This document shows, one piece after another, positions 1,387-31,980 of a stretch of 34,901 bases of DNA. Position numbers and translations under genes: made by a program. A model generated the notes under the pieces. It worked only from the letters and a program-made list of their open reading frames with translations, did no database searches and was not told where the DNA came from. This stretch comes from Perkinsus chesapeaki ATCC PRA-425 (taxonomy: Eukaryota > Protista > Perkinsozoa), in the NCBI GenBank assembly GCA_013115145.1, contig JAAPAO010000374.1, positions 1 to 34,901 on the forward strand, written 5' to 3'. Position 1 is the first letter of the stretch. The number at the start of each line of letters is the position of its first letter.

Positions 1387-4300
1387 TTATTCACCCCCTA
1401 CTCGAATGGGTTCCATGCCGAAATGAGCCAACACTTTCTCAACCTTTACAGGACATTCCTGATAATCGATAAAATGCAAGGTAATATTCCACAGTACCTT
1501 ATTAGAATAATACTGCAGGAGGAACGAAGTGGCCTTTCCCAATTCATCTATCCGCTCCTTATCTTCTATTAAACGCTCGAGTAACTAAAGTAGTATTATT
1601 GCTATAAAGAAGTGATCCTCTATAAAAGGCCACATCAACTACCTACTACAATAGAAGGCTTATGTACTATACACGGTCAATCTATCTTTATCCAGCTCTA
1701 GGTCTATATACAAACTTAACATGAAAAATATCAACTGTGAGCAACTGCTGCAATTAAGGTTGACGCTCCTCCGAATCGATTTGAGTGATTGTTTCTTTTA
1801 TAAATTAGAATTGTCGCCTTACGCTTGTATCCCAGTATCACCAACATTATGCCACATTTCCGGTAAATCTATTCGATAAAATGGTTTCCCCTATGCATAT
1901 CCTTCCTCCTCCTCCACTACCTCACAATATGCCTCAGCTGCCTTCTCATCCTCTCCTTTGATTTGATACACCTTCCCCAACTTAGGCAGTATATCCTTAT
2001 AAGCATTCCCATCCACTCTATGGTTCTTCCGGAATATCCTCCATGCCTATATATCACTTCAAACCGCCTGTCCCCATACTTACCGTCTCTAAACACACCA
2101 CAGCTTCATCGTCAAAGCACATACCGAGACAGCAGTTACCCAGCGATCTCCAGCCCACCAACAACTCTGGCCTGACAGTAGATTCCATAGAGTGTATTTA
2201 TTCCATTATTATCAAATATAGTATTATACACTGATGTTCATCTACTAGTATATTGACTAATTCATCTTCAAATATCATACTTGCAATAACTGGACGGCAT
2301 CACAGAGCTATCACTACCAGTCTTGAACCGTATACGATATTTCCTATTCAACATTCTCTCACAGAGTGCGAGCCCTCTGACACTTCCATAAACAGCTCAG
2401 GGGCCACTTTATGGATCTATTCGACATGCTTTCGTTAGCTTAATAGTTATGTAGATGTTGATAGGTGTAAGATGATAATAGTTTTAAGTAGATGATAGCT
2501 CCATCTTGGAGTGTTGTCATCAGGCCCGCAGTCTTCCTTCATTCCCTAGTAGACCACCCACCTCAGTTCAACTGCCTTTCTATAATAATATGCCGCATAA
2601 TTAATATGTCCTTGAGCCTCATACACCCTTCCAAGACCACACCAAGCCCTGAGAATACCGCTACTACTAATAAATAAACTATAGTGTAGATCGAAACTCC
2701 ATCCACCACCACTATCGCGAAATTCACCCCATTGATGTATGATCCAGTTCAGTTGCCTCCCGTAATGCCATGATAGCTGCCGATGCCACACCCTGCTGCA
2801 TGTACCTGCCCCTTCTATTCCACAAGCTACTCAACAACAACGACTTCAGTGCCTAAACTACCTACTCATTTCCAACACACACCATTGCCGCAGCCTTCTC
2901 CCTATTACTAGTGTACAATCTCGCTGCCTTCTGATAATACGATATAGCCTTATCACTATCCTGGCATGACCTAATAACCCAACCGCCTCTTCACAGCTCT
3001 ACCGCTACCCTCTACCCGTGATAGACCGCCATCACAAACATGGTCTCCGGTGCGTATTGGTCTATCCTCAGGCACCGGTGGGCCAGCCCCGCCAGCTGCT
3101 TCCGTCTATCCAATAACTTCCTACAAAACGACAGCCTATTCCACTTAAACAATGCCACGTACACATTCTTTCCGATGAATTATATCTTCTTTTCGCCTAT
3201 TTAGTGCAAGCCAATGGCCACTACGAATTTACTACTGAACCCCCCCCAATCCCCGAAGCTTTCCTCCTTGGTCAGCCACTTCCACTCCGACAAGGATCAC
3301 CCATATATTAATATTCTTCGACTAGAACACCCTCCCCAATTAACCTTATTATTATTACAGCAGGCCAGCGTGATGGTCAGCCCCCTTCACACTATCCTCC
3401 TCCTCCAGTGTAACAAATGCCTCAGCTGCCGCGTCAAACTCGCCACTCTCCAAAAGACATACTGCTAATCCAAGAGCAATACCATAATGTTTAGGGTGCC
3501 TCTCAGATAGCTTCTGGAACCTTACACTGAAATAACATAACTACTTGGGAAGGGCATACCTCCTGGCTGCCATTCTGAAGAGGGGCACTTCAGAGGAGGC
3601 TACTGCATTCAAACCAGACTGAGAACAGCAAGCCATAGAAAGAATGCTAGCAATAGGGACTAAGTGTCTAACTAAAACCATATTTCTATCAGACCTTCTA
3701 CTATATCAGTCCACTAATAACAACCTGTCATGCTCGAGGGAATTACCACACAGAAATTCAACACTTCCCTGACTATATGCAATGAATCAGGATGACGAGA
3801 TACTCGATATATATGGAAAAGAGTGAGACCTCCACATTATACAATTTCCAGCGCGCCCCGAATTATTCCCTATTACCTCAGCTGCCATCTTACATGCTGT
3901 AGCCCAAGCCATCTCAGAGATGGTCGCCCTATTGGAGCCCTCATCAACCGAAAGGTACTCATCTGCTGTGACCAACAACGAAGTCAAAAACTCATCCATG
4001 CTCCCAGCAGATACTCGAACAAGATTCTCCTCCGATAACGCACCTATCCCATACCATTTCGTGGCGCGCGGTCATTCCCCATCCTCCACCTTCTCTTAGT
4101 TGAATCTCTGATATTTTCATTCTGCACCGTATAAGGCCTTCCCAAGCTGGCCACAGCAGCGGTGCCATGGCTATAGAACGTTTATACAGCTCCATGGCCT
4201 CTTCTGGCCATACATCTACAAGAACACCAATAATATCTTACTGCCGGTAAAAGCCCATCCGGTGGAAACTAATACTACTATGAGATTCCTTTCTACCGCC

Positions 4301-5428
4301 GCCAGTGTGCATATTTGAGAAGCAGATCTCCAGTGAATGACTCAAAACGATGTGCTTGTAGAAATCTCAAATGATTAATATAAAAAATCACTTAATACTC
4401 CCAAAGTATGATTGACAGAGACCAATAGGGAAGCTTCCAAAACCTCCCGAGTGTGTTTCAGGGCCCATGTCGTGCTGCTGGCCGCTGCGGCGGCAAGACT
4501 GGGTAGAGTGACATCGAGAGCTCTAATCCAACCCAGGCCCCCAACCCAGCCACTACTACCGACACCCTCTTTGCCATGCCACAGTATTCTCTTATGCTTC
4601 CTCCACCATCCCTCCAGTAGATGCCCAAGGTGGTATCCTGCGATAGCATCCAACTTCCCAAGGTGCTTGTCGGACACAGTGGCCTCTATAAGGGACACTA
4701 GTTCCCTGTCAAAAGGTCTAAACTCCTCTTCATTAATTCGAGCTTCTTGCCTGAACCACCACATCACTTCTTGCCCTAACAGTCCGCCACCAACTACCCT
4801 TCAATCGCCCAGCACACTAGAGTGACCAGAAGACTCAGAGTAAGGTCGTCACCACCTGGGGGAAGCTCCTCGATCCGCTCCAGTCGAACAGCATTACGTA
4901 AATAATGTAACGCCTTCTTTGCCTTTAACAGCCTCCCCAATGACTGTAGTGCCCTGCCGTGCTCTCCTCTAGCAACCAGTGCCCATGGCTCCATTAGGGA
5001 CGCATCCGAAAGGTCTACAATGGTGGATATCAATAAAGCATGCAAAGCATGCCTATTCACCGGAGAAGCGATGCATGCTGCCGACACACGGACAGGTCCC
5101 TGAAGGCAGCTCCAGACCATGAAGCCACTGAGAAAGCAGTAAGAGATAATATAGGAGGGGGAGATATCACCTCCGCTGCTTCCGGCATGCCTCGCTCGAT
5201 AAGAACGCATTCAAACGCACCAATGGAGACGCCATTAGTAGCAGAAGAAGAAGAAGCCTTCTGGGCTCCTCCTCCTCCACGCGATGACAGACCATTACCA
5301 CGTGATGTTAAGGACATAATGGCGAGAGCGGTATGAACAAACCTCTCCGACAAGTTCCCATAGGAGCGCAATAATACACCGACAAGATCTCGAAGCAGTT
5401 GTGTTACATTACTAAGATTCATCGTCAT
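1387..5428 (-). CDS. CDC23: Divergent multi-exon TPR protein, anaphase-promoting complex subunit 8 (CDC23/APC8)-like
   Basis: Hand-assembled exons match CDC23 motifs in order: LVARGEHGRALQSL (~4980), SIAMAPLLWPAWEGL (~4150), LAGLAHRCLRIDQYAPETMFVM (~3060), KAISYYQKAARL...AMVCVGNE (~2900), YMQQGVASAAIMALREATELD (~2780), RAWCGLGRVYEAQGHINYAAYYYRKAVELR (~2600), LPKLGKVYQIKGEDEKAAEAY (~1960), ATSFLLQYY (~1520). Putative last exon ends ...IRVGGE* at 1387. Confidence 0.72.
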
Positions 5429-7083
5429 CTAATTCGACTACATCAATATGACAATCGGGCCCAGCTTCCACAACAGCCACTTCATCTGTCTCCACCATCG
5501 GCCGTGCATCCTCAAATTGGCGAAAGATCAATGGCGTCGCTCCGCCGCATTTTGGTAAATCGTACATTGCCTCTTTCACCTTGTTGGTCTCCTTACCAAT
5601 TGAGGATAAGAATTCCTCTATAGACGAAACCAAAGGCATATTCGCCACGAAATAGGTCTGCGCGGGGACCTTATACCTGAGCAACTACTATACACCTGAA
5701 CTAACCATTCTCTTATAAGTCGAAGCACACTACGGAGCTAAAAGAAGACAAACCAGAGAATGACATCTTCCGAATACTAGAAACATATCATTCAGCTATA
5801 GCTGAAATATCACCCGGTCGCCTGTGGATCAACTCGGGGTTGGACCGAGTCTGTTCCATTAATTTACTCTATGACATAGAGATAACAAGACCAGTGCCCA
5901 ACAGTCATTACCAATTTTGGCGCGATACTCCCCCATACTAAGCCCCACACTTCCCCCATCCGTGACTACCATCGAATCGCTCGAGTCCGTTCCTGCAAAT
6001 ATGCGTATAAGGCAACTCGAGCATCACGATTGTCCAGGAGAAAATCCACAACGGCTTCGAGATGGTCCCAAAGGTCAGCACCTAACAAACGGCGGTTGCT
6101 ACCCGACATAGTGGCAGCCCACTCTCATCTGACAGCTACAACGGTGAGGACCGCCAAACTACTGCTCTGACCAACTCTAGCAAACCACAATAAACTCCCC
6201 AGCCCAAAAGCTTTGCTTCCGGTATCGATCGATACTTCATCCGAACTCATATGAGAGAAGACTATGTGGAATGCCAAAACGTTCCCCCTCGAGCAAAGGC
6301 TCGAAAGCCGAAGGGAAGCCTCTGCAGTAGAAGGAGCCGTCGCTCTCATCACCTACCCGCAAGTTGCTCCGATGTCTCTAGGAATTCTAATCCTCCTTCT
6401 AGAAAAGCTTCCTTTTCAGATTTCGATCGCATCTTCTTCTCGACATCTCTAGTCGCCAAAGATTCCTCCGCGGCCTGCAAGATGCTCCAAATCGCGCACC
6501 CTGAAGATTTTGACTTACCTGATTTCGTGCAAGATTCTCCTCGGCGTCCTCCTTCGCTTTTGTTAGCTCCATTATAGACTCATACAACTTGTAGTCGTTG
6601 TTCCGCATCGCCTCTGCGGCCTTAATTATATTAAACCTTGTAGAAATACCTCCACCAGGGATCGAACCAACGACCCTCACCCCTTATCCCTAACAAGACA
6701 AGCTAGTTCCCCGAGATGTTCTCGACTGAAATCCCGCAAGTCCAGACGTTCTGGAAGTCGCCTCATCGGTGACGCATCTTTCTCCTGTTTAATATTAACC
6801 ATCACTCCACACGCCGGCGCAGATGTCTCCCTCCTATCATCGAAAGGAGATTCCTAACAACGAGCTTATCACATCAGTCAACTCAAGCCAGCCAACTCAC
6901 TTCTGTACTTTCGCACATTCTACAGGACTGCTCCTGTCCCGTACCATGGACTCTATAAATCCCTTCACCCTCGCATAGGGGGCACTCGGAAATATCACCA
7001 TCGTCCGTGCAGCTACTACTATCTGGTACACGCTTCTTTACAACACCCAAAGCAGCTTTGATAAATATTGGGCATATCTTCAT
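5412..7083 (-). CDS. Multi-exon hypothetical protein with N-terminal CxxCxGxG...CxxC zinc-finger-like motif and coiled-coil segment
   Basis: Open exon-like frames at 6883-7083 (ECPLCEGEG...SCRMCE), 6540-6680, 6360-6490, 6240-6325, 5960-6090 and 5412-5684, separated by short GT..AG segments. No family recognised and the 5' end is uncertain. Confidence 0.5.
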
Positions 7084-7223: not shown

Positions 7224-7855
7224 TTACTGGACCGTCTTGAGAGTGCTCGGGGGGAAGGGACTTTGATTTAAAGTAGTCAAGACCAATTTGATAACTTGAA
7301 CATATTTAATGTTAATTAATAGACGTGAATGTGGATTATTCCAAGGTGAGGGGATAACGTTCGACGTCTGGGTAACGGGTTCAAAAATGGGCAAATGATT
7401 AACTTTCCTGGAGTCCCTCCGGAGGTTTTTGGGATACCTCCGATGCTTCAGACACTACCGGCTTATCGCAGTTTGTTGGCAAACTGGACCGGAAAACACA
7501 AAGGCCTCCGCCCAATCACAAAGGAGTAAAACGTTTAATCTTGGTTGCTGAAGAATCGATTTGGTTAACGTTAAATGTTGAACATTTTTCAACTTGCCTT
7601 CACTTAAAAATGAATATGCTGATCGTGGTCGAATTCGGCTTCCCACAGTGATGGTGGGGAAAGGGTTATTACGACCTGCAAGTGTTTTCAAGGAGGATGC
7701 TCAATTTGATAGTAAAGTTCGAGGCACGCTACCAAGGGAGACGTGCGATGAGACACGAGACAAGACCTTGCCAATTTCCCTGTCTCATTCATCCTTCCAA
7801 AAAGTTTTCAGCCGTCTCGTTATTCGAAAAGAGACTGATTTTTAAACAACTGAAT

Positions 7856-8854
7856 ATGAAGCTAGCCACTGCCGGCATCTTTAACCTCATCATCGAGGTA
7901 TTTGGGAGTAATAAGGGCAGCATGGTTTCTGGTATGGTACCTCGATTTATTCCACTTGGTGTTTATCAAACTACTGGTGATGTGCCATTCTTTAGCCATT
8001 TTATTTTGAGAATCAAACCAGGAAATAAAGGAGGGTTGGAATTCCTAGCTGGTCAAGTGGAACACAACTTCATACAATCGGTCCCTCTACCTGACCTTAA
8101 GATGGACATGTCTAGTTTGGAGATACCCGGTCAACGATGCTGGTTACTGCTTTGTGAAGGATTGCCGGAATGCGTTAACAAGATCAAACAAGTGAGTTGG
8201 ATATTGAAAAGGAACGTGGGCAACACTCCACTTCCCCTCCGATCAAGTTCAATTGTCGCCTGCATGTCTAATGAGGGTAACGTTATATTAAACTTACGTG
8301 GCAAAGAGTTCCCCATGCGAAAGGTATCAGATGAGCCAGACTTTGCTCTAGAGAAGCCTATTGAAGTACCGGAGGATGGTTGGTATGTTACCGTCGGGCC
8401 TGTGGACGGCATCGACAGTGTGAGCATACATTTGGAGAATGGAGAAGGGGAGGTGATAATGACGGTTAATGGACATAGTGAATTGAAGAAATATCATACT
8501 CTGAAGATACATCCACTCGCCCCACGTTCGAAAACGAAGACAAGGTGTTACGAAATAGCCATCCGCTTCTCGCGAAGGATAATCTTGATTAAATTGGCAA
8601 TGTTCGATCCTGCACTGGGACATTGGCCGGTGATGATATGTCGAGACAGGGAACTAGTAACGTACTTGGCACTTGGTCAGAGATATGTTCGCTTAGTGAA
8701 GGATGATGGTACTAGAGGTAATAAAAGAGAGAATCCCGGAGAACAGCAGCCGTCCAGAAAGAGGAAGAACACGAACGTTTACAGTGTGGCGAAGAAACTA
8801 CATGCTGCGACTGAATACGAGGAAGTCTTGCCCAAAGTTGATATTACCGAGTGA
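7856..8854 (+). CDS. Intronless hypothetical protein with predicted signal peptide (lineage-specific secreted-type family)
   Basis: In-frame ATG at 7856 within the 390-aa ORF gives MKLATAGIFNLIIEVFG (signal-like), followed by a PLGVY motif and a beta-rich body. No introns. The family resemblance is from recollection only. Confidence 0.6.
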   Translation: MKLATAGIFNLIIEVFGSNKGSMVSGMVPRFIPLGVYQTTGDVPFFSHFILRIKPGNKGGLEFLAGQVEHNFIQSVPLPDLKMDMSSLEIPGQRCWLLLCEGLPECVNKIKQVSWILKRNVGNTPLPLRSSSIVACMSNEGNVILNLRGKEFPMRKVSDEPDFALEKPIEVPEDGWYVTVGPVDGIDSVSIHLENGEGEVIMTVNGHSELKKYHTLKIHPLAPRSKTKTRCYEIAIRFSRRIILIKLAMFDPALGHWPVMICRDRELVTYLALGQRYVRLVKDDGTRGNKRENPGEQQPSRKRKNTNVYSVAKKLHAATEYEEVLPKVDITE

Positions 8855-23826: not shown

Positions 23827-26800
23827 TCATCGCCTTCTTCGATTGGGGCGTGTACGATCAGTTATCTCAATTCTATCTCTTGGAACACCAACAGCTTCCA
23901 CTAGGAACTGCCTCACTGACTGAGCCACATTCCCTTGGACCTGACCAGCTCCACAGTAGAACCCCCTAGCATAGAGCATCTTACCATCACAGTGTTGGGG
24001 CCCAAAACGGGATCGTCCCGTACAGTAGCGCTCGATGCATTGTGCTTGGCCAACGCCTTTGCGAACTCCGACAGCTTCAGATGATACTTATCGACACCGG
24101 CAATTAGGGTTTGGGTCTAACGAAGCCTCCTCAAGCCTTGGATTGCACCACAACGACTTGCCTTATTCCCGGACACTTTGTCGGTGACTCTGATAGAGAT
24201 CATTGGTGGAGGACCATACTTCAGCAAACCAATAATGTCATCCGAGGAGGAAAGCTCACCACCTGAACAGGCAAGAGTTCGCCGGGCTTCCTAGCAGCTT
24301 AACTTTGCCATACTTCCAGAAGGTACTATAGCAGTGTAAAGCTCAAGGCCTCGAGACTCGAAGGCTTTGCCTATATCAGACTTGGCTACCGAATCACCAA
24401 CTTGAACCCTGAAAATATGCAGTATACGAGCTACGCTGAGATGGACTCAGGTTACTTCTTCCCGCCCTTGCTCAGCGCGCTTGCTAGACGATCGTCTACA
24501 CAGACGTCCTTGCGGGTGGCCGAGGAACTGCTGGTAGCTTCCTCGGTAGAACCCTCTAAGGCTTTTATGTATCTATTCAAAACAACATGCGTTAGGCCTC
24601 CTGTTTAATGATTCTGGACTCGGCAAATGCCTTCCTACTTGTGGAAGAGATGTCGACATTCCTTGCCGGTGAGGAAATCATGCTTGCCAAGAGTTGACCC
24701 CAACGATGCCTAATCAAATATCAGTAGCCCCCACCATAGAGACCTACTTCTATAACAGACTTCCACACTTGATGAGGTTTATACATTTCTATAATATTCA
24801 CCTTAAGTTCAGAGTCTATGTTGGCCTTCAGCCCTGAAAGATACCACTCCAAAGCCCTCATATCGGTCCACTTACCATCAACACTAGTGCTTGAAGCTCG
24901 TGTCTTGGGTCTAGGCGCGGACTTACTGCCCTTGGCTGTAATAGCGTGGGCTTGCAGCTCTCCCTTACCTTGACTGACACTAGTAATAATAACATCACCT
25001 GAATGAGCATGAGTAACGTTTCACTCTCTATGCCATTCTATCATACTCTGATAACTCCCATTATCCTCTACGGGTATGGTGAGCGAGTGAGCCCAATTAC
25101 CCTGCATAACTCTTAGCGTTGGACTGTGTGTATGTGATAGCCTTTGTGTTCGTGAGACTCTCGCCTCGACGGAATCATACGAAATTTCATCTCGCAGGCC
25201 GGGAGAGGATAATTTGATATTTACATATGCTAATATTCAAACACTAGTTGAAATTTGATATTTTTGCAATCCTGCAGGCCCCAGCAGTAAAGGGCGTTAG
25301 GCACGCATGGTGCCTCGGTGAGAGCAACAAGGCAGCTGACAGAGGCAATTCCTTCCTCGCATACCTCTCTTTTCCTTCATCTTCAGTATCCCCTCCTTCT
25401 CCAGTTCCTTCAATAGCTTAGTCACCTTACGCCAGCTAGTCTTTCTAATGTCAACTCGTATTTGCCGCTCATCCCTAATTTCCGGACCGAGCTCGTCCAG
25501 CCTACCACCACCATCGTTCACCGACTCCATCAATCTAACTGTTTACCTCGAAATCAGCTCCGTTCGTTTACACATGGTGCTGCTCTCCTTCTGAGCATTA
25601 GAGTACAACACAGCAGCTTGGATGGGCAACGCTGACTTGTCGATCTTAGCCAGAACCTCAATCACAGCGTATCTTTCAAGTAGAATTACAGTTGAGGCAT
25701 AAACACTTCTTGAAGGCTTACCTGACAAGCTCGTCATATTGTGCCTGAGTCATTTCCTCGCTCTCTTGTGTGACAGCATCTTCGGGCTCTTCACTGACTG
25801 CTGTTTCACTCGTCTGTGGCGGAAGACTGACCAAGCCAGCATCAGTCACCCTTCTTACTTGGGCGTTCTCCTGGCTTGGAGCCTCAGCGCTTTGAAAGGC
25901 ATCTCCAGCAGGTTCCTCTGCTTCCTGTTGCATGTCCTCTGCTGGTGGCAGCAGTGGTCCCTGTGGGCCCATGTGGAAGATTTGGTCCCCGACATTGTGA
26001 ACTATCTAAAAGCAACCAGAACTGTGATATTAACCACAGATCTAAGCTCTTACCTCAACTGCCTTACCAGACACACCAGTCGCTGAGCTCTCAGCCAAGG
26101 CGAGTTGACTGCTGCTCAACAATGAACGCCCTACATAGCATAAGTCTACTGATGGAGGGAAATGTGGTAGTATTACCAATAGCGACAAAAGGGCCACCAT
26201 TATCTACTCGAATCACACACACTGCTCCTGCTTGGAAGGATGGTGGTCCCTCGACTCTATTCTGAGATGGATACAGACATGTGACGCGAGAACAGAGGAA
26301 GATCGTATGCCCGCAAAGGAGGAGTAAATCTCAAGGGCAGAGATTGGGCCAGTTCAACGAAGCAAATATCTAAATCATTTATGAGAATTGACTTTGAATT
26401 CGTTCTGCTTGAGTTTACGGGTTGACTGGAGCAACTTAGTTTGTCGCTCCAGTAAACTGAGTGGAATAAGAAGGATTTCATGAAATTCATAGGATGGAGT
26501 CCATAATTAATAATTTCATAGACTGACCAGAGATAGACTGACCACGATATATAATTTATCGTCTACTTATCTCTACGCTCAACCTAGGCTGCTCTTCCTC
26601 GGTGTTACACTGGCAACGAGACGCTGACTGGGAGGTATGAGAGTACGAAGGATCTAGCTGTTCTCTGAAATGCAATCAGACACCTGGAGAGGCTGAGAAT
26701 ATGATGGGCCAGGTGAAACGTGAGTGGCAAATAGAGGATCTATTATGCTGAAAAGCACCAGGATGAAAGGATAGCAGGTATGGCGGGCAGTGGGAGGATG

Positions 26801-29800
26801 ATAGAGCTATTGAAGGGAAAGAGCGATGGGGAAAGGAGCAGGGGTGTAGAGCAGCAGAATCATTTTGAGCCAACTTGCAGTATAGCTGTAATAGTTGTTG
26901 ATGCCGGCGGTGTCAATACGTAGACGTGGACAGTCCTGAACTCTCTGCACTCGACTGGAAGTGAGAACATGCGTACTGATTCCAGAACTCCTTGGCTGGT
27001 AACAGGTGGTAACAAATTGGATATGACATAGCCAAGGCTGCCATTAGTTCCTTTCACCCTGAGGAGGGTCACTTCCACATTCCCGGGCGGCACACTATGA
27101 GACTGGGTGCAACAATTGGCCAAGCTGACAGTTTGACAAAGACTGCGAGGTGGGAACTGTGCGGTGAGGTGCCCCTCCGTGAGCAATTCATGCTGCTCAA
27201 ACTAGGTAGACATAACAAGGCTGGTTAGCACAGCTCTAGTAATTGGACGTATGCCCATGTGTTTTCACCTGCGATGTACTGGTTTAGTACTGCCCGACTC
27301 CCTGAGCAACCGAACACTATTTTGTTGACTGCTAATGACAATAATAATGTCAATGAGACGGCTTCTATTCACGGTGAACATAATATCACCCAGCTATCAT
27401 ATGCTATTTGCACAGATATGCTCGAAATGGAGATTATCAAATCACAAGTGCTAGCTTAGTCAGCTGAGCTGACGCACGGAAACCTAATGAACAACGTATG
27501 GGGCAAATGCAACTGTTCTTTCCCCGCTATCCTTCCTCATGAACGAAGCAAAATAAGTTGTGAAAAAAGGTACACCAAGTACAATTTCGGGGGAGTTACC
27601 ATGTTGTAGAAGAAGAGCACACCAAGTACCGTCACAATCTTCCGTGTAGTGACTAGGCGGGATGAGTATCGTTGTACTAGCCCTGGGACTAGCGATATCG
27701 AATGCCAGCTTAGGGAGGTAGTCATACCCTTTCTGCTCGATGTACCATGTACCGTCTGACAGTTTAACATGGACGTCTTGGTGTGCAGCTTGCTCGACGA
27801 TCTGTGTCATCTTGTTCAGCACGAACTCGAAGAAGTTGCTGGGCAAAAATATGGAATAGGATCCGGTATCATAGAGAGCTATACCATTGGGTACTTTCTG
27901 CATAAAAGGTTGGCCCCTAGAGCTCACCAAACCGACATAGGAGAGTACTGTATTGAAGTGATACGTGGATGGTTTCATCGGAATCACTGTTTTCGGTGAT
28001 TCGGTCGCACACTGTTCTGCCTTAAAAGCACCAAGTATAACTTTACCAGTAAAGGTTTTAGAAAGGCTGGGGGCACATATCGATACCGTAAACTCGCGGA
28101 TGATCTTCCTCAGGTGCAACTGCATCAGAATGTTCTCACCAGATGCACCATCACGGTAACCAATCCCAAAGTAATTCATAGGCTTCTCGGTTGGAAATTC
28201 GGGGTTTGGGGACCATCCTATAATAAGTCGGAATTCCATATCGAGCTTATGACCGGCTAGTTTAACGACACCTCGATGAACCACGGTCGTAATTGCACTG
28301 CTATCATCGAACTTAACCACGAACCTCTCCTCGCTGTAAGGGTTACATCCTCCCACACAAGCATAACAAATGCTTGGGGGACACTCGCCATAAGTCACCT
28401 CATACCAGTCTTTATAGATAACATAGGTTCCAGTGGAGCCAGAATCCATGTATAAGTCTAATGGCTGACCATCAAAGGCTACCCCAACCACTGTGTTATC
28501 CTTAAAAGGCAGCGATATTTGGCTGCGTATCAGGCTCAGCATCTCGCTCAACACTACGATAACTGCGACGAGAATCATCGAGATCCGGTGTAGTCGTGCG
28601 AGCCGAAGATCGGGAAAGGGCGGAAACGCGACAGCACATGCGCGACGGTCGAGGCGTGACGCTTCGGTCACATCCGGATACAGTCTGGGAAAGTCTGTCC
28701 CGATATTTTCGCTTTCAAAGTGCACCAACAGTGAAATTCTATCGAGTGGAAATCGGATATTTAGCAGACCATAAATCCTCTAGTTGTTTACACTGACGCA
28801 AAGCTGCCCCATTACATAAGAAACATCAAGTGCTGTGCAGTAGAATTGAGAATAGCATGGTTGATTGTGTCACCTAGGGCGAGCGAAGTGTCTCAGACGC
28901 TAAGGGCAGGCACCGATGGAGGTTCTCCACTGGAGGGAATGGTAATGAAATTAGTAATCTCAGATGGGTGTATAACGATTGGTACACATGAATTACGTAC
29001 ACATGAACCTCGCACACGGAATTTTTGACCTTTAGCTGGTAGATCAAATTCCGGTACACTCAAATCTCTGTCGACGAAGTGTGATACACCAAAAATAGGT
29101 TCAGGGTCAAGTAGTACACAAAAATCTCGATCATATGAGTGTACGTACACCGTGTACGGTACACGAAGATTTGGTTCAGTTCGATTTTGTACTCCTCGAA
29201 CTCGTACACCCGAGGGCTCGTACGCTTGCGTGAATTTTTTTAGTAGGTAAAGAGATCACTAGCTTGTTAATCTAGAGACCTAGCGGTCAATTCCCAGAGG
29301 CGACATAACTGGCAAACTTTGTCTGTCTGACGGAGCGATTAGCACTTTTTGGGGGATCAATATTGAGTCAATGCGGGCTCTGACTAGGGGTGAACGCGCT
29401 GACTGTGTACGTGTTTTAAGCGATCGAGTTGATTGTGAACGTGATTTATGCAGATCAAATACTAAGTGTACGTGTTTTATGTGCACCAATCGTTAACATC
29501 CCTCTCAGATTACGTCAGAGTGCCATATCTTTGATTACATGTGCGCAACCCACGGCCTGGGGGCCACGCTCTGATTTCATCAATGCCCGCGGAACTTCAG
29601 CTGATAAGTGATCATATCTGATATTATCTGTATTACCCTTCAGCTGCTGAAGGGATATATCACAGCGATATTATCACTTATCAACCAATGGCTGAAAGGT
29701 GACGTGAAAGGACAATCGGGTGGCGGCCGAAGACTTCACCCGAAGTAGACAACGCCTCATGGAACACGGCAGTTGAGATGTTGGTTGGTGATGGGGCCGC

Positions 29801-31980
29801 GATAACTACGGTGGCCATGGTAAGGAGTGCCGTGCGGAATGTAGACTGGGCCAAGCTCTGAACCAGAATGTGTCGGCCGGCCCGGAGAAGGCTCCAAACG
29901 AGAACGGAGAGAGGAGGGTGGTTCTGTATTACAGAATCTGTAAGGGAACCAGCTTCGAAGGAGGCTGAGACTTAAAGGCTCGCATGTCCTCGTTTGCGAA
30001 CGCGTAAGATGACAGTATCCTCACTCTGATGCCGCTCGTTGATATGGTAATTTTATATCATGCTTCAGGGCAGTTGTTTATAGGGCGGTTGATTCCATGG
30101 AGCTTCCCACTCGTGAACAGATATCGCGCCTCCGATTCGGGCCGAATCATTCGGCGGCGAACACCTGGATTCAGGTGGGCCGTATAATACGGCCCGTATT
30201 CCTCATGCTGACTTGGCCATCTTCCAACCTCATCAGAGGCGGCAGCTGCGTGGATAATCAGGCTGAGATGGAGCGCTGAGGCTGAGCAGAGCATGGTGCC
30301 ACCGTGCTCCACCACGATGGTGGAGAGTTTAGCTTGGATTCACAGAGATAACTGGGCTGAGGTCTACCTCGCTGATGACACCACAAAGCTGTGTATTTGT
30401 GACGTTATAGGCCTGAACGCCCTCGGGCTTCATGCGAACAAGTGCAGCATGCGACAATAATTATTGGACGGCGAACGTCCACGTGGTGGTGGCTCGCATC
30501 ATATTGGAGAGAGACAAGAGCAAGAAGGTGTTGGAGGAGCAAGTATGGCTTTGGAAGAGGAAAGGGCGACGCCGTGTTACTGATATTCGGGACGATTGCT
30601 CCAGGAGCGAATATGTTATGCTCATCACGGTGGGCCCTCTACACTGTGTCCTACTGTGTACACTCTATCACACTGTGTCCTAACAAGCGCAGAAACGTAT
30701 TGCCTTAGGTGGCGCAGAGTTCATGAATCGTCGCGAGGGAATCGGGACTGCGGGCAGGATGCCGCAACTAAGGAGAAAAACGGCCGCCGGCTTGCCGTAA
30801 GCGTGAGGGAGACAGTTGAGGAGTGAGTTGGCGAGGGGCGCGGCGATGCCGGATCAAGGAGGTTGCGGCTTAGCCACAGTGGCTATTACGGCACTTTACA
30901 GTTCGACGAATGATGTTGGAATGAGCAAACGGCGCGGACAGCTGCGTCATGGTAGCGGACTGTCATTTGACAAGGCAATAACGAGAATGAAAAGTTCATT
31001 CTTAGTAGGTTACTGTTCGGCTTGCGTATCATGTAACTAGCACTGACAACCACGCACCCCAACTGAACGACTAAAGATGTATTAGGGTGTATTAGACGAC
31101 TGAAGCTACGCGATCTAATCAAGTATAATGTAGACAGCACGTCATCGACTGTAGCGAGATTGACACGCATCTTAGTTGCCAATAGGAACTTGCCATGTTC
31201 GCAGTCGACTGCGAGTCGAGTACTGGGCCTCGGCAGCGGGGCCTGAATTGTTTGACGGCAGATTCCTGCTGTCTTAATATAGTTCCCATGACATACTCTG
31301 GGCAGCCATGCGAGAACGTAGAATTTAGCGGATCATCAATCAAAGAGTATATTGCGATTCGAGAACATGCTATAGCGTTCGTGGCCACTCTCTCCAGCTA
31401 AAATGAGCCTCGCACCCCCATGGTCTATTACCACTCCTGGAAGCATTAGATCCGCTCCTCTCGCCAGAAACGGCACCACCGGCTCAGATATCTACAGCAA
31501 TAGCACTTCCCTTAATTTTCTACTCCCTTTTTCACTACCATGAATCTTAGGCTCGACAACCCTAGCGTCCTATTAAGCCCAAAAATGGTAGGATAAAGGC
31601 AGCTCGAGCCATGCAACTTGAACAGCACTGGTACATTCCCATCTACTATGTAAATAACCGTCCTAGTCTCCAAGTGCAGCTCAGACACAGGCCCAGTGCC
31701 CAACAACTGTGATGTCGATGCCTCTGGATATTGGCGCTCCACCTCCGTTACGAGCTGACATGGCGAATATCCATTAATAAGCGTTCAAATATGTTAATGG
31801 AAAGATCGATATAACAATAAGATAGCCCAAGGTAGTAGGTTAGATGCCATAATAATCATTGGCGCGTCGTAGCATTGCAAGATATCGGTCAAGAGTCGAT
31901 GTATTCCAGCCATGTACCTTTTTTCTATCCTTTCCTCCAAGTCTTGTCTCTCTTGTATGCCCTAAAGGCTTGCGGAACAT
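23827..31980 (-). CDS. EIF2D: Translation factor eIF2D (ligatin; MCT1-like/PUA, SWIB, SUI1), multi-exon with one 5,170-bp intron
   Basis: Exon 1 (31918-31980) MFRKPLGHTRETRLGGKDRKK. Exon 2 includes VIYIVDGNVPVLF...LYPTIF. Exon 3 (31432-31491) ISEPVVPFLARGADLMLPGV. Exon 4 from 26261 NRVEGPPSFQAGAVCVIRVDNGGPFVAIG. Then GKAVEIVHNVGDQI, VDIRKTSWRKVTKLLKELEKEG and SUI1 TLIAGVDKY...VQGNVAQSVRQFL. Stop at 23827. Confidence 0.85.
27484..28578 (-). CDS. Intronless secreted pepsin-family (A1) aspartic protease, nested in the eIF2D intron
   Basis: Signal-like MILVAVIVVLSEML from ATG 28578. Catalytic motifs LYMDSGST and ALYDTGSY, and the C-terminal IVLGVPFF..YFASF signature. Confidence 0.88.
   Translation of the reverse strand: MILVAVIVVLSEMLSLIRSQISLPFKDNTVVGVAFDGQPLDLYMDSGSTGTYVIYKDWYEVTYGECPPSICYACVGGCNPYSEERFVVKFDDSSAITTVVHRGVVKLAGHKLDMEFRLIIGWSPNPEFPTEKPMNYFGIGYRDGASGENILMQLHLRKIIREFTVSICAPSLSKTFTGKVILGAFKAEQCATESPKTVIPMKPSTYHFNTVLSYVGLVSSRGQPFMQKVPNGIALYDTGSYSIFLPSNFFEFVLNKMTQIVEQAAHQDVHVKLSDGTWYIEQKGYDYLPKLAFDIASPRASTTILIPPSHYTEDCDGTWCALLLQHGNSPEIVLGVPFFTTYFASFMRKDSGERTVAFAPYVVH
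28982..29471. promoter_or_regulatory. Cluster of 11 GTACAC/GTGTAC hexamers upstream of the aspartic protease
   Basis: Copies at 28982, 28997, 29054, 29114, 29139, 29145, 29152, 29159, 29204, 29405 and 29466. The regulatory role is inferred. Confidence 0.45.
29602..29683. repeat. Nested imperfect inverted repeat
   Basis: Outer arms TGATAAGTGAT (29602-29612) / ATCACTTATCA (29673-29683); inner arms CCCTTCAG (29636-29643) / CTGAAGGG (29647-29654). Confidence 0.75.
30097..30750 (+). mobile_element. Possible highly decayed non-LTR retrotransposon reverse-transcriptase remnant
   Basis: Across frameshifts and in the correct order: IQVGRIIRPVFL (cf. PQGSxLxPxLF), VYLADD (cf. YADD), LGLHANKC (cf. GLxxNxxK), NYWTANV (cf. 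LxWxxHI) and KYGF (cf. WG). The similarity is weak and judged by eye. Confidence 0.3.

Follow-up and report, generated by a model that had tools for sequence, protein, structure and literature searches.

Host/nested gene pairs, such as mammalian H13/Mcts2 (surveyed in PMC11694760, PMC13309782, PMC3192792), consist of a complete protein-coding gene, born by duplication, that lies in an intron of its host, and a conflict between 3'-end formation in the nested gene and read-through of the host is expected and has been studied at mammalian pairs (PMC13309782, PMC11694760). A comparable arrangement was observed in Perkinsus chesapeaki ATCC PRA-425, in a stretch of 34,901 nucleotides that constitutes an entire contig (JAAPAO010000374.1 of assembly GCA_013115145.1, C2809 in our numbering) and is referred to below as the window. 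Three annotated FOL47 proteins of P. chesapeaki are identical (100%) to loci of this genome. The gene for the translation-recycling factor eIF2D is divided here by a third intron of 5,170 nt, which contains, on the host strand, an intronless gene for a predicted pepsin-like peptidase, together with a retroelement-like relic and a miniature inverted-repeat transposable element (MITE). Judged from the sequence, this is probably a host/nested pair, in which the intron grew by the uptake of foreign DNA (a duplicate of a protease-gene unit plus two elements) and the host is still spliced in cis. The arrangement is of an already known kind, i.e., a nested gene in an intron enlarged by duplication and mobile elements.

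Unlike the mammalian pairs, the present one resides in a compact protist genome with introns mostly of ∼50 nt. It also differs from nested genes that originated as retrocopies: the P. chesapeaki gene appears to be a DNA-level duplicate accompanied by a relic of its old neighbor, and it shares the strand of its host. The encoded protein resembles plasmepsins, proteinase A and BACE (MEROPS A1), to which its best Foldseek matches belong, in having one D[ST]G motif in each of two lobes, a bilobal predicted fold and a signal-like N-terminus. In contrast to typical A1 peptidases, it is highly divergent, lacks a score with the Pfam Asp profile and is aligned by sequence profiles through its C-lobe only. 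The MITE, 538 bp long, is similar to hAT-like MITEs in that its termini are inverted, its target duplication measures 8 bp, its copies are numerous and non-coding, and an empty site can be identified; its termini begin with GGGTG, unlike the usual hAT-type ends, and hAT denotes a likeness here.

Structure and identity of the host gene

The first six exons of eIF2D were placed exactly by locating each junction, and the exons after the sixth are given approximately only (Table 1). The donor of intron 3 reads GTG/GTAATA, with the G at 31431, and follows an exon that ends in GADLMLPGV; the acceptor reads CTCAG/AAT, the last intron base being 26262, and both sides are in phase 0. Direct reading of donor and acceptor thus reproduced exactly the 5,170-bp phase-0 intron by which, according to the initial annotation, eIF2D is split. 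Its description as a size outlier was likewise borne out, since the five other placed introns measure 46–163 nt and intron 3 is ∼100 times the usual size. Introns of P. marinus sampled in a published study ranged from 39 to 1622 bp and were mostly below 100 bp (PMC3101222), such that intron 3 exceeds the maximum of that sample more than threefold.

Every host exon is open, and canonical splice sites flank intron 3 on each side. In exons 1–3, all 113 codons and the six splice dinucleotides are intact. On the same strand, a preceding open reading frame (ORF) terminates ∼200 bp before the eIF2D start codon. Reading through the donor of intron 3 (31431–31339) adds 30 further open codons (VIDHGGARLILAGESGHERYSMFSNRNILFD) before a stop, and retention of the intron would therefore yield a Pre-PUA stub of 143 aa.

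The domain content of eIF2D was tested one exon piece at a time. Exon 2 matched the Pfam Pre-PUA profile with an expect value (E) of 0.004 (18.1 bits, under the cut-off), while exon 3 matched positions 7–25 of the PUA profile (E 0.063), corresponding to the N-terminal part of this domain. Exon 3 could also be aligned with residues 104–130 of human eIF2D (5oa3; human stretch GGADLMLPGLVMPPAGLPQVQKG, aligned as EKLVGGADLMLPGLVMPPAGLPQVQKG), and the beginning of exon 4, NRVEGPPSFQAGAVCVIRVDNGGPFVAIG, extends the human stretch by eye with a one-residue difference in length. Exon 4 alone gave no match in Pfam or in a PDB sequence search, and single exon pieces generally gave weak matches or none when compared with PDB sequences. 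Downstream, the eIF2D-specific winged-helix domain WH_eIF2D (PF25304) was recognized on one exon piece with 37.6 bits (E 2.6e-9); a search of the genome with this profile gave 45.1 bits, above the cut-off, as the sole match. The SUI1 domain reached 24.6 bits (E 3.5e-5), below its cut-off of 25.5, the 67-aa exon fragment covering profile positions 18–54 and the remainder lying in the next exon. Matches to eIF2D domains thus lie on both sides of intron 3, in order and on a single strand.

Within the assembly (41.7 Mb in 3,544 contigs), neither the DNA flanks of eIF2D nor WH_eIF2D had a match outside this contig, and the gene is accordingly taken as single-copy, with no second intact copy in the assembly. 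An intact copy elsewhere, which the initial annotation had linked to an insertional pseudogene, was consequently not found.

A related gene of the MCTS1 type, with Pre-PUA and PUA domains, was observed on another contig (C2900:7528–9395, minus strand; GANIMTPGLTSPGG). Its Pre-PUA match is above the cut-off, and a gap of ∼540 bp separates its two Pre-PUA matches. The PUA domain of this gene is uninterrupted at the position homologous to eIF2D intron 3.

The nested protease gene and its probably duplicated surroundings

The nested gene sits wholly between two host exons that are collinear and in phase. Its product carries the motifs D45-S-G-S and D237-T-G-S, and the conserved cysteines are kept; among 11 aligned sequences, D237, T238 and G239 are invariant and D45 is present in at least 90%. 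At least 16 annotated proteins of P. chesapeaki (UniRef, "Peptidase A1 domain-containing") are collinear with it from end to end at 38–64% identity, 11 of these 16 having a precomputed PF00026 match. These paralogues were retrieved by a word-based search, in which matches came from P. chesapeaki only.

The Pfam Asp profile did not match the nested ORF even at E≤1. A profile built from the paralogue family retrieved plasmepsin IV (E 1e-5) and BACE2 (E 1e-4) from PDB, through the C-lobe only in both cases. An AlphaFold model of the protein (mean pLDDT 69, pTM 0.45) was compared with PDB using Foldseek, which gave at least 500 matches at E≤0.001, all of those listed being pepsin-like peptidases; the best reached E 2e-12 over about 335–350 columns. 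The low TM of only ∼0.3 in these comparisons is attributed to the lobes being poorly oriented to one another in the model. The nested protein is thus predicted to be a divergent pepsin-like peptidase with the bilobal pepsin fold, and the intact, intronless protease gene on the host strand that had been described from the sequence was recovered with its 364 codons and both D[ST]G motifs. On inspection, the N-terminus (MILVAVIVVLSEMLSLIRSQ) is hydrophobic and signal-like, and its position is conserved among the paralogues; secretion and proteolytic activity are considered putative. No identical entry was detected among 5.8 billion database sequences, and the nested copy therefore appears to be unannotated.

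In several paralogues the N-lobe motif is no longer complete, reading DSR in P0003, SET in P0006 and DMG in P0012 after the loss of one residue, and part of the expanded family may thus be non-catalytic. The other paralogues inspected reside at tandem or dispersed loci, and the suggestion that introns served as a route for spreading the protease family was not upheld.

By our own count, ∼41% of intron 3 is derived from mobile elements, ∼39% belongs to the protease module and ∼20% is unassigned. Upstream of the protease lies the relic of the C-terminal tail of a second gene, designated gene Y (41% identity over 61 aa, pairwise E 2e-8; 67% nucleotide identity over 126 bp). In two units of a tandem protease cluster on contig C3415, gene Y is located ∼0.85–1 kb upstream of the protease paralogues on the same strand, and both units match the relic at the same relative position and strand. 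Only the C-terminal tail of Y is left in the window. Gene Y on C3415 (15127–16511, minus strand) consists of two open frames of ∼200 aa each within the C3415 tandem cluster and has no Pfam match.

Downstream of the protease, the flank is shared with a truncated, frameshifted pseudo-copy on contig C442 (110393–111253), which covers the last 93 codons of the protease and a further ∼490 bp (window 27765–26991). The two copies are 96.6% identical over 204 coding bases, six of the seven changed codons being non-synonymous, whereas their 3' flanks are only ∼82% identical and contain indels. Gene conversion or uneven decay could account for this contrast. The module as a whole occurs once in the genome; other paralogues match its coding sequence only, at 71–73% nucleotide identity. 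When 26100–31600 was searched, terminal repeats of any type (inverted, direct or LTR) were not detected, and the ends of the 5.17-kb insert carry no target duplication. The segments 31249–31431, 30925–31068 and 26262–26990 (∼1.06 kb in total) matched nothing, and a search of the genome with the whole intron showed both of its ends and most of its interior to be unique, which answers the proposed check of the insert ends for copy number.

The core of the insert thus resembles one unit of a protease cluster, with Y tail, spacer, protease and 3' flank, and probably arose from it by segmental duplication. The combination of a Y-tail relic upstream, a shared flank downstream, and ends without repeats or target duplication argues for a duplicate made at the DNA level rather than a retrocopy or the cargo of a transposon.

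Mobile elements within the third intron

The spacer between the Y tail and the protease is occupied largely by the relic of a retroelement-like family, characterized by a terminal repeat of ∼190 bp and a gag-like ORF1. The relic is collinear with C2939:13601–12066 at 65–78% nucleotide identity, and the initial ∼190 bp of this element are repeated at a minimum of 10 loci. The intact ORF1 on C2939 encodes 323 aa, is gag-like and has a zinc-finger-like C-terminus; the relic shares 55% amino acid identity with it over 56 residues, is spread over all three frames and contains 11–18 stops per frame. Since similarity ends ∼85 bp into ORF2, the relic lacks the 3' part of the element. Between its end and the ATG of the protease, ∼240 bp of non-repeat DNA remain.

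ORF2 on C2939 encodes a YVDD motif and is matched 39 times in the genome. Searched against Pfam, it gave nothing at E≤5, and PDB sequence and profile searches were blank; one family member matched RVT_1 at E 7e-4, under the cut-off. The parent family is therefore termed retroelement-like, its nature being unproven, in view of the otherwise silent Pfam and PDB searches. It may represent a very divergent retroelement lineage. In the region C2939:7001–17000, ORFs were found at region positions 2919–6189 and 7383–8677, both on the minus strand, and the unit there comprises ORF1 (323 aa), ORF2 (426 aa) and ORF3 (232 aa). A Ty3-like element with matches to RT_RNaseH and Integrase_H2C2 adjoins this retroelement-like unit.

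A reverse-transcriptase relic, suspected in the initial annotation, was rejected as a candidate. The match to RVT_N (E 0.002) is under the cut-off, PF13655 has no match in the genome, and the piece in question aligns with the zinc-finger end of the gag-like ORF1. An element relic is indeed present, but it is the decayed gag-like 5' part of the retroelement-like family and not a reverse transcriptase. Pfam searches with 20 other open pieces of intron 3 found nothing.

The relic is interrupted by the MITE, which has no coding capacity and on either side of which the same 8-bp target duplication (TCTCAGAT) occurs without mismatch, at 28958–28965 and 29504–29511. Its family numbers at least 40 genomic copies, with 79–85% identity over most of the element and up to 91% in shorter fragments. 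At three further copies 8-bp duplications were also observed, one of them with a single mismatch. The C2939 homologue represents the empty site of the MITE and carries one GTCAGAT. Other copies possess a variable internal segment of ∼110–410 bp that is not in the window copy. Since numerous members of the family are located at the ends of contigs, it probably causes breaks in the assembly. A search of the window for excision scars of the hAT type (X/X'/X) gave a sole match, inside the GTGTAC repeats of the MITE. The motif cluster and inverted repeats previously ascribed to the insert do exist, but the GTGTAC cluster and the main inverted repeat belong to the MITE, and most of the inverted repeats are explained by the two elements.

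A second, palindromic insertion of ∼95 bp also lies inside the retroelement-like relic. Its arms are 48 nt apart and enclose an inner palindrome; it is missing from the C2939 homologue and has no other copy in the genome.

Table 1. Coordinates of the eIF2D gene and of the features within its third intron (window positions; empty cells, no value given)
Feature	Position	Length	Strand	Remarks
eIF2D exon 1	31980–31918		minus	MFRKPLGHTRETRLGGKDRKK; ATG at 31980; donor GTACAT; boundaries read from sequence
eIF2D intron 1		163 nt	minus	
eIF2D exon 2	31754–31539	72 codons	minus	Pre-PUA-like
eIF2D intron 2		47 nt	minus	
eIF2D exon 3	31491–31432		minus	ISEPVVPFLARGADLMLPGV; first strand and motif of PUA domain
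eIF2D intron 3	31431–26262	5,170 nt	minus	GTAATA...CAG, phase 0
Relic of gene Y C-terminal tail	31248–31069		minus	41% identity over 61 aa
Retroelement-like relic (decayed 5' part)	28822–30924		plus	antisense to host; terminal ∼190-bp repeat and gag-like ORF1; interrupted by MITE
Palindromic insertion	29595–29690	∼95 bp	none	17-nt arms 29602–29618 / 29667–29683
MITE	28966–29503	538 bp	none	exact inverted arms of 30 nt, 28973–29002 / 29466–29495, inside terminal ∼45 bp
Nested pepsin-like (A1) gene, intronless	28578–27484	364 codons	minus	host strand; ATG at 28578, stop 27484–27486
Protease 3' flank	27483–26991		minus	common to pseudo-copy on C442
eIF2D exon 4	26261–26177		minus	opens NRVEGPPSFQAGAVCVIRVDNGGPFVAIG, continues PUA
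eIF2D intron 4		46 nt	minus	
eIF2D exon 5	26130–26054		minus	
eIF2D intron 5		48 nt	minus	
eIF2D exon 6	26005–25722		minus	
eIF2D intron 6		49 nt	minus	
eIF2D exons 4 to last	26261–23827		minus	rest of PUA, WH_eIF2D, SUI1, stop
eIF2D stop	about 23829–23827		minus	

Origin of the nested arrangement and its implications

If the locus is a host/nested pair, the third intron of eIF2D, which lies within the PUA domain, would have enlarged to its present size as foreign DNA accumulated. A protease-cluster unit (Y tail, spacer, protease and 3' flank) would have been copied at the DNA level into this intron; a copy of the retroelement-like family would have landed antisense in the spacer between Y tail and protease and lost its 3' part, and the MITE would then have inserted into this relic, creating the 8-bp target duplication. 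Alternatively, the retroelement-like copy and the MITE may already have been present in the donor locus before the move. The host protein would come from a conventionally cis-spliced mRNA (donor GTAATA at 31431, acceptor CAG at 26262), and the protease would be expressed as a unit of its own, with either a start within the ∼240 bp that precede its ATG or an added spliced leader. Use of the protease 3'-end signal would compete with full-length transcription of the host, as at the mammalian host/nested pairs. Exons 1–3 are intact, whereas numerous stops interrupt each frame of the retroelement-like relic, and this contrast suggests that the host gene stayed under selection once the intron had been filled; the argument is weakened by the consideration that part of the divergence of the relic may predate its insertion.

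Several observations weigh against a host gene that is still spliced across this intron. Its size is ∼100 times the local norm, more than three times the largest in the published Perkinsus sample and far beyond the range reported for the genus (PMC3101222). A nested gene on the same strand, with a 3' end of its own, should truncate host transcripts and likely terminates host transcription. The single-exon matches to Pre-PUA and PUA fall under the Pfam cut-offs, and exon 2, when compared with 1.84 billion representative proteins, retrieved no eIF2D, the sole matches being two junk proteins rich in repeats; a search of JGI metagenome contigs with this exon likewise found no relative. With exon 2 lacking a relative and the nested ORF lacking a database entry, the spliced model is without support from public annotation. 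Moreover, the function of eIF2D overlaps with that of MCTS1-DENR and an MCTS1-like gene is present in the genome, so that loss of eIF2D could be tolerated. Most of these points would equally suit an insertional split, in which eIF2D is effectively broken, exons 1–3 persist as an orphan stub, at most an N-truncated product is made from exon 4 on, and MCTS1-DENR covers the function. However, the host exons have remained open and the splice sites canonical, in contrast to the complete decay of the retroelement-like relic within intron 3, and no other copy of eIF2D occurs in the genome; such a break is considered less likely, albeit plausible. A different relation between the two genes is conceivable through the spliced leader, trans-splicing being documented in Perkinsus (PMC3101222, PMC9399869): the protease mRNA would be cut from the eIF2D pre-mRNA by spliced-leader addition and polyadenylation, or the two halves of eIF2D would be joined in trans. 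The position of the nested gene on the host strand and the short stretch of just ∼240 bp of non-repeat DNA before its ATG would be in keeping with such coupling. Nevertheless, no sequence feature demands it, and neither paper offers evidence for polycistronic transcripts in Perkinsus, PMC9399869 naming the term polycistronic once, in a general list of proposed functions, and PMC3101222 making no mention of it. Coupling of this kind is regarded as improbable. In case of spliced-leader release, eIF2D and the protease would be alternative products of one transcript. The joining of protein-coding halves in trans is not known for nuclear genes in this group, which counts against the second version. 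The broader proposal that giant introns sheltering whole hydrolase genes recur in the tiny-intron genome of P. chesapeaki, with the protease mRNA being freed from the eIF2D pre-mRNA by spliced-leader trans-splicing, is offered only as a long shot.

The two remaining explanations concern the nature of the insert itself. A misjoin or a collapsed repeat could have placed unrelated DNA between adjacent eIF2D exons, given that the assembly is fragmented (3,544 contigs) and that the intron contains one of the 40 or more copies of the MITE. Yet unique sequence makes up both ends of the intron and most of its interior, and it is very improbable that a chance misjoin would have left the host exons unchanged in order, strand and phase. 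At the MITE itself, the relic is collinear on both sides with a single uninterrupted C2939 element, the 8-bp duplications match and the C2939 homologue provides the empty site, from which the contig is taken to be continuous at this point; an assembly artefact is thus very hard to credit. The entire 5.17 kb might instead constitute one mobile element with the protease as its cargo, as the presence of transposon-derived sequence and of a gene from a multi-copy family would suggest. But terminal repeats, whether inverted, direct or of the LTR type, are missing from the ends, as is a target duplication, the module is single-copy with only sub-parts recurring (the MITE, the protease coding sequence, the C442 fragment and the C2939 relic homologue), and the inner elements are secondary insertions with ends of their own. 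Because the tests of defining termini and of copy number were both negative, the cargo-transposon reading fails, and almost no weight is given to it. The "mobile or duplicated cargo module" of the initial annotation can therefore be retained as duplicated, in view of the Y-tail relic and the C442 flank, and not as mobile, having no termini and a single copy.

As a host/nested pair, the locus would exemplify 100-fold growth of an intron amid introns of ∼50 nt, by segmental duplication followed by two element insertions. It also carries a warning for annotation: where gene prediction is adapted to short introns, neither the nested gene nor the 5' exons of eIF2D will be detected. The latter adds a new, unannotated and apparently intact member to the large, lineage-expanded pepsin-like family of this shellfish parasite, which infects clams. 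The arrangement further provides a natural test of how the spliceosome of a trans-splicing organism, accustomed to tiny introns, would deal with a nested gene on the same strand.

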